Source: Schizochytrium sp. TIO01
Taxonomy: Eukaryota; Protista; Bigyra: Labyrinthulomycetes
Assembly (NCBI GenBank): GCA_004764695.1
Contig: SMSO01000008.1
Span: forward strand, 1,014,296-1,078,295
Length of the DNA: 64,000 nucleotides
Reading direction: 5' to 3'
The notes under the pieces are model-generated. The model made no database searches. It worked only from the letters and a program-made list of their open reading frames with translations, and was not told where the DNA came from. Made by a program: the position numbers and the translations under genes. Position 1 is the stretch's first letter; each line of letters opens with the position of its first letter. Positions 13,995-62,840 of this stretch are shown here, one piece after another.

Positions 13995-16900
13995 ATGTCG
14001 GACCACCCACGTGTTGTCGCTGCCCTTGAACAGCTTCAGAATGGTGCTACAACACTGAAGTAAGTTAGCATCGCTTGCTTGCTTGCTTGCTTGCTTGCTT
14101 GCTTGCTTGCTTGCTTGCTTGCTTGCTTGCTTGCTTGCTTGCTTGCTTGCTTGCTTGCTTGCTTGCTTGCTTGCTTGCTTGCTTGCTTGCTTGCTTGCTT
14201 GCTTGTCTGTTGTATTAAGTATGCATCTAACAAAGAGCAATATAACAACGCAACAAAGATGAAATCCTGAAAGCCAATATCGATCACTCACTAACTCTAT
14301 GCATGCATCTAATGTGTATTGTCTTGGTTGCCATCATTCACTCAAATCAAAAGTCTTGGTGGCAACAACATCGGCCCAGAGGGTGCCAAAGCAGTGGCTG
14401 CGGCTCTGAAAGAGAACCGGTCGCTGTCATCACTTGAGTAAGTTGTCTTACACTTGCTTGTACAGGAAGCTCGCTTACTTGGTTGTTTGGGTGGTGGGTT
14501 GTTCAGTGTGTTAAATTGGACGGTGATATTTTGCTCAGTTTTGATTTGCAAGTTTGTGTATGCGATTGCTTGTTTGATTGATTCACGGATCAATGATCTG
14601 TTTTATTGAGTTTGTATCCAACAAAGAGCAATATGACATTTCAACAAAGATGAAATCCTGAAAGCCAAAATCGATCACTCACTAATTCTATGCATGCATC
14701 TAATGTGTATTGTCTTGGTTGCCATCATTCAATCAAATCAAAAGTCTTGGTGGCAACAACATCGGCCCAGAGGGCGCCAAAGCAGTGGTTGCGGCTCTGA
14801 AAGAGAACCGGTCGCTGTCATCACTTGAGTAAGTTGTGTTAGACGGCGGCATGTGGGTTGCTTTTGCTAAATTGTTTCGTTGATTGCTTGCTCAGCTGGG
14901 TAGGTGGGAGGTGGATTGTTTGGTGTGTTGAATTGCACAGCGGTGGTTAGCACGAATTTGTTTTGCAAGTTTTTACGCTTGCTTGTTTGTTTATTTGATT
15001 TATAGATAGATTGTCTGTTTGATTGATTCAGTATGCATCCAACAAAGAGCAAAATGGCAACGCAACAAAGACGAACTCCTGAAAGCCAACATAGATCACT
15101 CACATCCATGCATGCGTATAATGTAATGTATTGCTTGCCATCAAATCAAAAATCAACAGTCTTCGTTCTAACAGAATCGGCTTGAAGGGCGCCAAGGCAA
15201 TGGCTGTGGTGCTAAAAGAGAACCAGTCGCTGACATCACTATAGTAAGTTGTCTTGGCAGCAGCTCGTGGACTTGTTTGTAAATAAGGTCCGCTTGCGTT
15301 GCTTGGTTGTCTGGGTGGTGGGTTGTTTGGTGCGTTGAATTGCGCGGTGGTCGTCTGTTGCTGGGTTTTAATTTTCAAGTTTATGTATGCGATCGCTTAT
15401 TTGTGTGAGTAATGGATTGATTGTCTGTTTACAAAGAGCAAAGTGACAACGTAGAAAGATGAGTTGTGAAAGCCGACCTAGATCACTCACGTCCATACAT
15501 GCGTATAATGTTATGTATTGCTTGTCATCCTTCAATTAAAATTAAAAAGTCTATATGGGAACGACATCGGCGACGAGGGCGCCAAGGCAGTGGCTGCGGC
15601 GCTGAAAGAGAACTGGTCGCTGAAATCACTATCGTAAGTCGTTTTGGCAGCAGCTCGTGGGCTTGTTTCTACATGATGCTCACTTGCTTGGTTGTCTATG
15701 TGGTGGGTTGTTCAGTGCGTTGAGTTGTAGGGTAGTCATTTGCTCGGTTTTGGTTTGCAAGTTTATGTACGCGATTGCTAGTTTGTTTGATTGATTGATG
15801 GATTGGTTCTCTGTTTGCATCAAACAAAGAACAAAGTGACAACATAAAAAGATGAAATTCTGAAAGCCAACTTTGATCACTCACGTCCATACATGCATAA
15901 GAATGCAATGTATTGCTTGTCATCCTTTAATTAAATCAACAGTCTATATTTGAACGACATCGGCGACGAGGGCGCCAAGGCAGTGGCTGCGGCGCTGAAA
16001 GAGAACCGGTCGCTGACATCACTATCGTAAGTTGTCTACGCAACAGTGAAGCTCATGTACGAACAAGTACATGAGGCTCGCTTACTTGGTTGTCTGGGTG
16101 GTGGGTTGTTCAGTGTGTTAAATTGCACGGTGATATTTTGCTCAGTTTTGATTTGCAGGTTTGTGTATGCGATTGCTTGTTTGATTGATTCACGGATCAA
16201 TGATCTGTTTTATTAAGTATGCATCCAACAAAGAGCAATATGACAACGCAACAAAGATGAAATCCTGAAAGCCAATATCGATCACTCACTAATTCTATGC
16301 ATGCATCTAATGTGTATTGTCTTGGTTGCCATCATTCAATCAAATCAAAAGTCTTGGTGGCAACAACATCGGCCCAGAGGGCGCCAAAGCAGTGGCTGCG
16401 GCTTTGAAAGAGAACCGGTCGCTGACTTCACTATAGTAAGTTGTCTTAGTGGCCTTATTTGTACATGAGACTTGCTTGATTGCTTGTTTGTTGGTTGATG
16501 TGCTAAGTTGGACGGTACTTTGCCAAGTTTTGTTTTGCAAGCTTATGTAAGCGAGTGCTAGTTTGATTGATGAATTGATTATTTGTTTGATTGAGTTTGC
16601 ATACATGGCCACGTGGCAACGATGAATTCCTGAAAGCCAACCTAGATGACTCATGCATGTAATATATTGTTCTATGCATTGCTTGCTATCATTCAATTAA
16701 ATCAACAGCCTAGAGCGGAATAAAATCGGCTCAGAGGGTGCTGAGGAAGTGGCTGCGGCGCTGAATGAAAATCATGTTCTTCAGAAAATCATGTAAGTTT
16801 CGTGCTTTTTTATGTTTTTAAAAAGCTTGAGTGATAAAAGAGAGATTCGAAAATCTGAAACTAATGAAGCAGAGTTGTGTGTACCTCGGCAGTCTTGATA

Positions 16901-60200: not shown

Positions 60201-62840
60201 CCTATCAAATTATATAGATTTCCTTCTTCTCTTTGTAAAAAAGAAAAGACTTCTTTGCCTTTCTTTGCGTACCCAACTACGTAAACTACTTAGGTAGTGT
60301 ACCAGCAGTACTACAAACACCAAGCACTAAAAAGAAAGAAAGAAAAAGCTTGGTCCTGACTATTACGATAGCTTTCCCTCGTGGATGATTCCACAAACGT
60401 ACTCTAAAGTTTGAAGGTTCTTGCATCCCTCGAGTGCCTTTGCGACGGCCTTTGCGCCCTCATCGCCAATGTTGTTGTAAGCAAGACTGTGAGTATAAAT
60501 GAATAAGTTTGTTTTGTTCATTCGTTGTCAGGAAAGACAGGTCCAGTCAGTTGATCCTGTTTTGTTTTGTTTTTCCTCACAATAAAAAGCAATCAGCTCT
60601 TCTTCTTCTTCTTCTGCTGCTGCTGCTGCCTATCAAATTATATAGATTTCCTTCTTCTCTTTGTAAAAAAGAAAAGACTTCTTTGCCTTTCTTTGCGTAC
60701 CCAACTACGTAAACTACTTAGGTAGTGTACCAGCAGTACTACAAACACCAAGCACTAAAAAGAAAGAAAGAAAAAGCTTGGTCCTGACTATTACGATAGC
60801 TTTCCCTCGTGGATGATTCCACAAACGTACTACAAAGTTTGAAGGTTCTTGCATCCCTCGAGTGCCTTTGCGACGGCCTTTGCGCCCTCACGCCAATGTT
60901 GTTGCTACGAAGACTGTGAGTATAAATGAATAAGTTTGTTTTGTTCATTCGTTGTCAGGAAAGACAGGTCCAGTCAGTTGATCCTGTTTTGTTTTGTTTT
61001 TCCTCACAATAAAAAGCAATCAGCTCTTCTTCTTCTGCTGCTGCTGCTGCTGCCTATCAAATTATATAGATTTCCTTCTTCTCTTTGTAAAAAAGAAAAG
61101 ACTTCTTTGCCTTTCTTTGCGTACCCAACTACGTAAACTACTTAGGTAGTGTACCAGCAGTACTACAAACACCAAGCACTAAAAAGAAAGAAAGAAAAAG
61201 CTTGGTCCTGACTATTACGATAGCTTTCCCTCGTGGATGATTCCACAAACGTACTTCAGATAAGTCAGGTTCTTGCATCCCTCGAGTGCCTTTGCGACGG
61301 CCTTTGCGCCCTCATCGCCAATGTTGTTTCCCTAAAGACTGTGAGTATAAATGAATAAGTTTGTTTTGTTCATTCGTTGTCAGGAAAGACAGGTCCAGTC
61401 AGTTGATCCTGTTTTGTTTTGTTTTTCCTCACAATAAAAAGCAATCAGCTCTTCTTCTTCTGCTGCTGCTGCTGCTGCCTATCAAATTATATAGATTTCC
61501 TTCTTCTCTTTGTAAAAAAGAAAAGACTTCTTTGCCTTTCTTTGCGTACCCAACTACGTAAACTACTTAGGTAGTGTACCAGCAGTACTACAAACACCAA
61601 GCACTAAAAAGAAAGAAAGAAAAAGCTTGGTCCTGACTATTACGATAGCTTTCCCTCGTGGATGATTCCACAAACGTACTCTAAAGTTTGAAGGTTCTTG
61701 CATCCCTCGAGTGCCTTTGCGACGGCCTTTGCGCCCTCATCGCCAATGTTGTTGCTAAAGACTGTGAGTATAAATGAATAAGTTTGTTTTGTTCATTCGT
61801 TGTCAGGAAAGACAGGTCCAGTCAGTTGATCCTGTTTTGTTTTGTTTTTCCTCACAATAAAAAGCAATCAGCTCTTCTTCTTGCTGCTGCTGCTGCCTAT
61901 CAAATTATATAGATTTCCTTCTTCTCTTTGTAAAAAAGAAAAGACTTCTTTGCCTTTCTTTGCGTACCCAACTACGTAAACTACTTAGGTAGTGTACCAG
62001 CAGTACTACAAACACCAAGCACTCAAAAGAAAGAAAGAAAAAGCTTGGTCCTGACTATTACGATAGCTTTCCCTCGTGGATGATTCCACAAACGTACTCA
62101 AAGTTTGAAGGTTCTTGCATCCCTCGAGTGCCTTTGCGACGGCCTTTGCGCCCTCATCGACCAATGTTTGTTGTCAAAGACTGTGAGTATAAATGAATAA
62201 GTTTGTTTTGTTCATTCGTTGTCAGGAAAGACAGGTCCAGTCAGTTGATCCTGTTTTGTTTTGTTTTTCCTCACAATAAAAAGCAATCACCTCTTCTTCT
62301 TCTTCTTCTGCTGCTGCTGCTGCGTATCAAATTATATAGATTCCCTTCTTCTCTTTGTAAAAAAGAAAAGACTTCTTTGCCTTTCTTTGCGTACCCAACT
62401 ACGTAAACTACTTAGGTAGTGTACCAGCAGTAGTACAAACACCAAGCACTAAAAAGAAAGAAAGAAAAAGCTTGGTCCTGACTATTACGATAGCTTTCCC
62501 TCGTGGTTGATTCCACAAACGTACTCCAAAGTTTGAAGGTTCTTGCATCCCTCGAGTGCCTTTGCGACGGCCTTTGCGCCCTCATCGCCAATCTCGTGCC
62601 CATCAAGACTGTGTTTGTTTGTTTGTTTGTGAACAAGTGAGAGTAAGTATATGCCATTTCCACCTTCTTCATGAGTGCCACTACTAGTTCAAATCTATTC
62701 TTCTTCTAGAAAGCTGACTACTACAACACATCGACGACGCGATGCCTCCTTCTTCTGTTCTCCTCCCTTCTGCATCGTGCACCTACCATATCTCCGTCGT
62801 ATCTTCCTGTGATGTCCTCAATTTATACTTGCCTAGTCAT
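51272..62840 (-). CDS. LRR(20) - acidic linker - helical region - Ser/Thr kinase - RING/Rcat (RBR-like) protein, about 1,500 aa; 5' end unresolved and internal LRR exons frameshifted in this consensus
   Basis: Twenty LRR exons run from 62525-62608 down to 54477-54560 (CACAG|T CTT...|GTACGT, phase 2, xLxxNNIGDEGAKAVAKALEGCKNLQTL). Linker exon 54110-54304 and terminal exon 51272-53960 also splice in phase 2 and in frame. Kinase: VLKEF, HCDIKPENIFL, IGDFD, TPRYVAPE, DMYSVG. RING-like: CLVC...C...LCRDC...CMKPEC. Rcat-like: CPNC..YVHDFDGCCAVECGNETCGHHFCAWC. A candidate upstream exon ends at donor 62787 (KLRTSQEDTTEI); the ATG at 62840 is out of frame with it. Confidence 0.75.
54477..62608 (-). repeat. 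Tandem LRR exon+intron array 3 (20 exons, 19 near-identical ~340-bp introns, period 418-432 bp)
   Basis: Introns differ mainly in an internal (CTT)n(CTG)n tract and homopolymer lengths. Exons differ at a few fixed codons. Confidence 0.95.

Follow-up and report, generated by a model that had tools for sequence, protein, structure and literature searches.

Large, clustered and fast-evolving receptor families that combine a variable leucine-rich repeat (LRR) sensor with a nucleotide switch and a TIR, death or other signalling output are known from plants (TIR-NLRs) and animals (NLRs), and ribonuclease-inhibitor (RI)-type LRRs occur in the NLRC and NLRP proteins. Diversity built from cassettes is also known from the variable lymphocyte receptors (VLRs) of lampreys, which consist of interchangeable LRR cassettes, and from arthropod Dscam with its arrays of alternative exons. 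Among described systems, the one closest to that reported here comprises the exon-shuffled LRR-ROCO genes of brown algae (Ectocarpus, Saccharina), in which LRRs are encoded by 72-nt phase-2 exons and concave-face sites are positively selected (PMC3341825, PMC11378527). Here, three tandem repeat arrays were analysed in a 64,000-nt stretch of the genome of Schizochytrium sp. TIO01 (contig SMSO01000008.1, positions 1,014,296 to 1,078,295; hereafter the window, within which all coordinates are given unless a contig is named), which had been predicted to encode a hidden modular LRR receptor system. The three genes formed by these arrays are probably members of a large, rapidly reshuffled subtelomeric LRR family of Aurantiochytrium with three classes of output and a candidate role in recognition.

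Tandem repeats of comparable length have already been described in this group. In a Nanopore/Canu assembly of Aurantiochytrium limacinum, subtelomeric ribosomal DNA (rDNA) is interspersed with 366-529-bp tandem repeats named LORE-TEARS, which were published as spacers with no GenBank similarity and with a proposed role in chromosome-end maintenance (10.1101/2023.06.15.545109). The window lies on a contig of 1.139 Mb (64-Mb, 37-contig assembly), at a distance of 61-125 kb from its right end, and its repeats match LORE-TEARS by period and setting, with periods of 385-391 and 425 bp and subtelomeric rRNA genes around them. It had been claimed that the arrays are invisible to an open reading frame (ORF) track; this is true, but such repeats were already in the literature as spacers.

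Tandem arrays with one LRR per exon

Tandem Repeats Finder called three arrays, at 14222-16446 (period ~391), 27143-30823 (period 385) and 54512-62592 (period 425, 96% matches). As predicted in both number and place, they contain 7, 10 and 20 LRR exons with AG/GT borders, each exon corresponding to one 28-residue RI-type repeat. Exons were searched singly, and single exons matched the RI-like repeat LRR_6 of Pfam (E = 6.5e-5 to 0.1); junctions were judged from single junction codons and exon lengths. LRR frames were found solely on the coding strand of each array in a six-frame motif scan.

Genes 1 and 2 are encoded on the forward strand. All exons of their arrays are exactly 84 nt long, are preceded by AG and followed by GTAAGT, and start with the third base of one codon and end with two bases of another, so that every intron is in phase 2. 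Phase 2 extends to the leader introns, to the intron before Roc in gene 1 (16793-16892) and to the intron before the tail in gene 2 (30807-31090). The two leaders, 65 nt of coding sequence each, are near-identical (MSDHPRVV[A/T]ALEQLQNGATTL): the leader exon of gene 1 (13995..14059, +) encodes MSDHPRVVAALEQLQNGATTL plus 2 nt and ends in phase 2 at a GTAAGT donor, and that of gene 2 (26972..27036, +) encodes MSDHPRVVTALEQLQNGATTL plus 2 nt. The gene 1 leader also resembles the leader ALAELQNGATEL of a transcript-derived protein, P0020. Intron 1 of gene 1 carries a (GCTT)33 microsatellite between leader and first LRR exon (14073..14205, +), and 12 copies of (GCTT)n stand at the homologous site in intron 1 of gene 2 (27056-27104).

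The LRR array of gene 1 (14354..16792, +) comprises seven 84-nt exons free of stops, at 14354-14437, 14745-14828, 15160-15243, 15550-15633, 15943-16026, 16352-16435 and 16709-16792. In gene 2 (27307..30806, +), the ten 84-nt exons start at 27307, 27692, 28070, 28439, 28824, 29209, 29595, 29941, 30338 and 30723. The predicted uniformity of 84-nt exons and phase-2 introns thus holds for genes 1 and 2 and does not hold for gene 3 as assembled, where off-length exons and stops make phase 2 only nominal. The underlying design of symmetric phase-2 cassettes of 84 nt stands, and the junction codon is itself variable. Taken as a whole, the observations of the original prediction were partly confirmed. 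No hydrophobic leader, signal peptide or membrane segment was seen in the window proteins, which on this basis look cytosolic.

Transcripts of paralogous genes

Splicing of this design is documented by MMETSP-derived protein ORFs that match the genome at 98-100% and represent paralogues of the window genes. P0128, a complete ORF of 1,240 residues with a 100% match to contig C13, maps to a 59-nt leader exon and 12 LRR exons, each 84 nt long; all donors are of the GTAAGT type, all introns are in phase 2, and splicing joins the LRR exons to one exon for the helical region, kinase and RBR module together. P0020 (98% match to contig C30) has the same exon design, and its LRR-to-Roc junction, ...LSLQTLS/LDVDIPDD..., is homologous to that of gene 1, ...VLQKI/LDNDVPEN..., in both position and phase (slash, splice border). 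These transcripts indicate that the exon design is real in this organism, and the long-intron subtelomeric arrays of the window would be spliced in the same way. In Hondaea, which provides the nearest annotated relatives, LRR_6, Roc, COR and TIR_2 are annotated together in single proteins. The agreement of the genome with MMETSP transcripts labelled Aurant... assigns the organism to Aurantiochytrium and also fits the unicellular stramenopile host that had been proposed.

The paralogues on contig C13 (1151749-1156630; L037/L035) and contig C30 (6625009-6628700; L038/L039) consist of 84-nt phase-2 exons separated by short, diverged introns of ~55-170 nt, and it is these short-intron paralogues that were found in the MMETSP transcriptomes. 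The long-intron arrays seem to have arisen recently, by amplification of units made of an exon and its intron. TAXON_ID 87120, printed in the headers of P0020 and P0275, belongs to a fungus, Rhizopogon burlinghamii, in the current NCBI taxonomy; the organism name in the same header reads 'Aurant...', and the number is untrustworthy.

Coding signal and hypervariable positions

The coding signal was measured in arrays 1 and 2 of the window together with 12 further arrays of the genome, three arrays with off-length exons being left out. This set holds 168 exact 84-nt exons of the AG..GT type, with zero stops in the phase-2 frame. Amino-acid entropy is near zero at scaffold positions and reaches 2.2-3.3 bits only at a few sites: in the 385-bp class these are the junction codon and positions 2, 3, 5 and 8, to which the 425-bp class adds 25 and 26. 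The high-entropy sites are the x residues of the LxxLxLxxNxIGx motif, which in established LRR structures face the concave binding surface. Non-synonymous difference amounts to 0.39-0.62 per site in hypervariable codons, against an intron diversity of 0.02-0.23 in the same arrays. In the scaffold codons of the 425-bp class, the proportion of non-synonymous differences (pN, 0.013-0.044) is lower than that of synonymous differences (pS, 0.07-0.11). The proposal of a diversifying repertoire agrees with these values; hypervariability is confined to the x positions of the LRR beta-strand and one loop position.

Purifying selection on scaffold codons and a stop-free set of 168 exact exons with conserved AG/GT borders are difficult to reconcile with non-coding subtelomeric spacers, the nature given to LORE-TEARS in their published description (10.1101/2023.06.15.545109). 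Under that explanation the repeats would have a structural role at chromosome ends or the nucleolus, the LRR frames would be relics and the ORFs separate genes that start at internal ATG codons. Such an assignment would suit the position of the repeats among 5S and 18S-28S genes, the high homogeneity of intron sequence across chromosomes, the lack of any database protein matching these particular copies, and the start that a gene caller gave to P0001, a Logan protein, at a Met inside the Roc exon. However, a phase-matched acceptor precedes every output exon, some tail exons have no ATG there, and the paralogue transcripts prove the same splicing design. A purely structural nature of the repeats is thus very unlikely, and spliced LRR genes remain the preferred reading.

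Output domains

The arrays had been described as ending in ROC-COR-TIR, a short tail, or a kinase with an RBR-like ligase, and all three ends were recovered, through Pfam domains, an RBR fold and a tail with no match. In gene 1, a 100-nt intron separates the last LRR exon from the effector exon of 853 codons (16893..19452, +; acceptor cag/T, phase 2). This exon encodes Roc (about 17032-17667, +; Pfam 2.5e-17) followed by COR-A (about 17896-18153, +; Pfam 7.4e-12), the order that defines Roco proteins, and then TIR (about 18970-19326, +; Pfam TIR_2 3.6e-12, TIR 2e-7). The Roc motifs are intact (G1 GKGGAGKTS, G3 WDYGGQE, G4-like VGTFLD). Weak PDB matches of the TIR domain are to bacterial TIR proteins (4lzp, 7uxr). 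A C-x-x-E motif (DYCRYEFEY) follows DVFLSHA by ~83 residues, in the place of the glutamate of the plant-TIR WC..E motif; this is a motif-level correspondence, as the PDB alignments end before the site. Pfam scans detected no NACHT or NB-ARC domain in the output exons, and the window proteins are therefore not of the NLR type.

The gene 2 array ends in a tail exon (31091..31412, +; acceptor ttag/A, phase 2) of 107 residues including the split codon, followed by a stop. The tail is predicted to fold as a helical hairpin (AlphaFold2, mean predicted local distance difference test (pLDDT) 70.5). It has no Pfam match, Foldseek searches with the model returned generic coiled-coil noise only, and the protein atlas gave no usable match either for the tail or for the helical region before the gene 3 kinase. 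A phase-2 acceptor is present at the start of the tail frame in all eight paralogues checked, several of which lack an ATG there, indicating that the tail is a terminal exon rather than a separate gene.

Gene 3, on the reverse strand, has an acidic linker exon of 195 nt with phase 2 on both sides (54110..54304, -) and an open effector exon of ~2.7 kb (51272..53960, -) with its phase-2 border at 53960. This exon encodes ~430 helical residues, then a Ser/Thr kinase (about 52070-52672, -; Pfam Pkinase 1.5e-29), which is of the non-RD type as HCD replaces HRD, and then a Cys-rich module of 256 residues (51275-52042, -). Pfam finds no family in the linker or the helical region and does not recognise the Cys-rich module itself (IBR_2 E = 7.9, not significant). 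A HMMER scan returned 1,610 relatives of the module, which directly follows a kinase in nine of the ten scanned with Pfam; the N-termini of the scanned relatives vary between LRR_6, ankyrin, WD40 and ubiquitin. IBR_1 was matched by 10 of 44 aligned relatives and RING models by others. The AlphaFold2 model of the module (pLDDT 91) has only RBR ligases as its top Foldseek matches, first RNF216 (E = 4e-5), then HHARI, ARIH2, HOIL-1 and parkin, and the Cys of GCCAVEC aligns with the catalytic Cys of parkin RING2 (Rcat) in a phmmer comparison, at E = 0.078 only. A RING1-IBR-Rcat arrangement is present, and the modelled fold supports assignment of the module as a putative RBR-type ubiquitin ligase.

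Cassettes of kinase and RBR-like module were encountered in thraustochytrids and dinoflagellates (P0131, Hondaea; P0139, Durusdinium; P0155, Polykrikos), and one relative of the module bears an E2 (UQ_con) domain. No description of the kinase-RBR cassette was found in the literature searched. Matches on metagenome contigs, several of them from the human gut, extended no further than the kinase core (query residues 396-658, at 25-47% identity) and were discarded.

Family size and cassette turnover

The genome was searched for further arrays and terminal exons, as the original prediction had proposed, and all counts from these searches of the window's own genome are lower bounds. At least 765 repeat units were matched, at least 406 of the 385-bp class and at least 359 of the 425-bp class. 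Among terminal exons, Roc-COR-TIR was matched about 17 times, the tail about 100 times and kinase-RBR at least 51 times, with open frames of ~925 codons in nearly all of the last. A same-strand array of the 425-bp class is found just upstream in all eight kinase-RBR paralogues fetched, and the six 385-bp-class arrays fetched end in Roc-COR-TIR (two) or the tail (four). The three kinds of output thus recur genome-wide on like arrays, in line with the proposal of swappable outputs.

Across chromosomes, 425-bp-class units share 94-100% identity, which extends to their introns. The number of array cassettes is 6 or 7 in copies whose Roc-COR-TIR exons are 99% identical to that of gene 1. The tail exon of gene 2 has a 100% identical counterpart on contig C24, but that copy carries at least 15 cassettes instead of 10, in an order that differs and is partly periodic, and a copy on contig C23 has its last seven cassettes in common with the window gene. 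As this turnover occurs among copies with 99-100% identical outputs, the number and order of cassettes change faster than the output exons. Whether arrays are invariant in order and number, which would have spoken against a diversifying repertoire, is answered at the level of paralogues only: there, they vary. The family is best read as germline-encoded, and the diversity seen lies between paralogues. In the contig C8 copy of gene 1 (L041, 4469-4809), two identical first cassettes stand 257 nt apart rather than ~390; this pair looks like a partial-unit duplication and may mark a breakpoint of unequal exchange.

Genuine spliced LRR genes could also serve purposes other than immunity, for example as LRRK-like or RI-like regulators in signalling, RNase inhibition or ubiquitin pathways, in which case the variation would reflect an unconstrained surface and subtelomeric churn. 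Many functions of Roco, kinase and RBR domains lie outside immunity, pN/pS is near 1 in the hypervariable codons, and a subtelomeric location predicts high recombination anyway. However, variation in concave-face codons is 3-25 times the intron diversity of the same units, which is beyond neutral drift alone, and TIR domains, non-RD kinases and output families of the sizes counted here are typical of recognition repertoires. A non-immune family is accordingly regarded as improbable, and a candidate role in recognition is preferred.

The disrupted array of gene 3

The LRR array of gene 3 (20 exons, 54477..62608, -) departs from the regular design. Nine exons are 84 nt long (at 62608, 61338, 60486, 59629, 58776, 57928, 55397, 54979 and 54560), and the other 11 are 82, 83 or 85 nt (62180, 61761, 60913, 60061, 59199, 58352, 57505, 57086, 56662, 56239 and 55817). 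In the assembly, the leader exon (62787..62840, -) has 54 nt and a TAA in frame, compared with 53 nt and an open frame in its counterparts in intact paralogues. In addition, one of the 84-nt exons contains a TAG and another an internal -2/+2 frame shift. Internal alternative acceptors were considered as a rescue for the off-length exons and were rejected, as only exon 61761 becomes a multiple of 3.

An alignment of the gene 3 units shows an exon core without variation and introns in which little varies except a microsatellite. Substitutions and exon-length indels lie, with few stray positions, in three hypervariable exon patches, and several of the length variants (TCGAT, GATCG) resemble mixtures of the common codons GAT and TCG. 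All 20 LRR exons are still flanked by the conserved acceptor (CACAG) and donor (GTA[AC]GT). Most other arrays of the 425-bp class have 84-nt exons throughout, and a paralogue on contig C5 (L002) keeps frame and phase intact throughout its leader and 11 LRR exons.

Off-length exons and stops could be decay mutations, and gene 3 and some other arrays true pseudogenes, particularly as an array on contig C23 (L005) with many off-length exons adjoins a truncated kinase exon. Decay of this kind is possible but unlikely, given that length changes within three patches, several of them GAT/TCG hybrids, are combined with splice borders kept in every exon and an open 2.7-kb output exon, that most related arrays are regular, and that the published A. 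limacinum assembly is of the Nanopore/Canu type. The confinement of the defects to hypervariable patches instead raises the suspicion of a long-read consensus artefact, and the balance of the evidence leans towards this explanation, in which the consensus of a Nanopore-type assembly would be wrong within a 96%-identical array. Real heterogeneity among cells has only a slim chance; in that case the off-length, hybrid-looking codons of the most homogeneous arrays would reflect somatic diversification, by targeted conversion or mutation among several hundred near-identical units, or splicing of different exon subsets. If this very unlikely explanation were true, the LRR repertoire of a unicellular protist would be individualised, in principle as in the VLRs of lampreys or in insect Dscam.

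Ribosomal RNA genes and other features of the window

Rfam identified three 5S genes, one 18S-5.8S-28S unit and a few tRNA genes in the window. The 18S-5.8S-28S unit (35364..40890, +) is situated between genes 2 and 3. One 5S gene (13422..13540, -; RF00001, 96.5 bits) is divergent from gene 1 and separated from the ATG by 454 nt of upstream sequence, a second (26391..26509, -; 96.5 bits) is divergent from gene 2, and the third (47971-48089, -) lies 3.2 kb past the gene 3 stop. The ATGs of the two genes of the 385-bp class (13995 and 26972) are thus each ~450 bp from a divergent 5S gene, so that a Pol III gene and a presumed Pol II promoter share a short intergenic region.

A full-length tRNA match by Rfam spans 115 nt at 41518-41632 (+), which suggests an intron-containing gene; it was unreported by ARAGORN. 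Genes for tRNA-His (42555-42626) and tRNA-Arg (43392-43466) are located nearby. In the 7-kb gap between gene 1 and the next 5S gene, a short ORF (21752-22015, +) has a weak APH/kinase-like match (Pfam APH, E = 0.0033) and may be part of a spliced gene.

Proposed mechanism

Each gene consists of a short leader, tandem 385-425-bp units of one 84-nt exon plus intron, and a terminal output exon, which supplies a Roc-COR GTPase switch with TIR, a coiled-coil-like tail, or a putative RBR ubiquitin ligase preceded by a non-RD kinase. In the model proposed here, cassettes would be added, dropped or reordered by unequal crossing-over and gene conversion, and because all exons are phase-2 symmetric, such changes would keep the frame. 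As the splice junction falls inside the LRR beta-strand, a new exon neighbour would also make a new surface codon. Concerted evolution would keep introns and scaffold codons near-identical, leaving concave-face positions that differ in almost every cassette. The variable LRR surface could then bind non-self or altered-self ligands and trigger the output, by NAD-consuming TIR chemistry, by phosphorylation and ubiquitination, or by oligomerisation via the tail. An immune or antiviral role is suggested by analogy, from domain types, family size and hypervariability, and the interpretation given in the original prediction is as a whole partly supported.

Several points weigh against this interpretation. 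Gene 3 is untranslatable as assembled, with 11 of 20 LRR exons off-length and stops in an exon and the leader, and the spliced-transcript support comes from paralogues of these three loci. Among 5.8 billion proteins, none is near-identical to the Roc-COR-TIR or the kinase-RBR exon (best 56-59% identity); as these copies are unmatched where other paralogues are present, the subtelomeric copies may have weak or no expression in culture. As pN and pS are both near saturation in the hypervariable codons, their ratio there reaches no more than ~0.9-1.9, and the case for diversifying selection therefore depends on the contrast with introns, which are themselves also shaped by concerted evolution. 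Immune function, finally, is argued purely by analogy. Since the host is culturable and carries persistent mirusviruses (PMC12606086), antiviral or antibacterial sensing is directly testable.

Comparison with known systems

If the genes are expressed, an anonymous class of spacer repeats would become one of the largest candidate recognition families in a unicellular eukaryote, comprising some 170 genes, three types of output and well over 700 LRR cassettes. This would place a repertoire in recombination-prone subtelomeres beside rDNA, extend the idea of exon-shuffled LRR-Roco genes from multicellular brown algae to a unicellular stramenopile, and link exon-shuffled LRRs to TIR and to a widespread kinase-RBR cassette.

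LORE-TEARS share with the window their occurrence in Aurantiochytrium and their 366-529-bp tandem units among subtelomeric 5S and 18S-28S genes. The original description treats them as spacers, whereas the units of the window are read here as exon-intron units of protein-coding genes. The putative ligase module of gene 3 resembles RNF216, HHARI/ARIH1, HOIL-1 and parkin in fold, in the RING1-IBR-helix-Rcat Cys pattern and in a Cys that aligns with the catalytic Cys of parkin. Unlike these proteins, it is unrecognised by Pfam and fused after a protein kinase, and the combination of kinase and module is seen again in hundreds of protist proteins whose N-termini are LRR, ankyrin, WD40 or ubiquitin domains.

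The window proteins differ from NLRs in that the switch is a Roc-COR GTPase and not a NACHT or NB-ARC STAND ATPase, and in their domain order, with the LRRs first and the output last. With VLRs and Dscam the family shares diversity built from cassettes, although the diversity seen here is germline and lies between paralogues.

The likeness to Ectocarpus ROCO genes that had been pointed out is well founded, given one LRR per exon, phase-2 introns and the order LRR-Roc-COR in both (PMC3341825, PMC11378527). A variable concave face, a stramenopile host and differences in cassette number and order between recent duplicates are further common traits. The LRR itself differs, being a 24-residue, plant-specific-like repeat on a 72-nt exon in brown algae and a 28-residue RI-type repeat on an 84-nt exon in the window, and stray LRR exons on the non-coding strand, a trait of the brown algal genes, were not seen in the window in the six-frame motif scan. 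Unlike the brown algal LRR-ROCO genes, the family described here is organised in regular tandem arrays with near-identical introns of 300-340 nt, is located in subtelomeric rDNA of a unicellular host, carries TIR after COR, and has kinase-RBR and a helical tail as further outputs.

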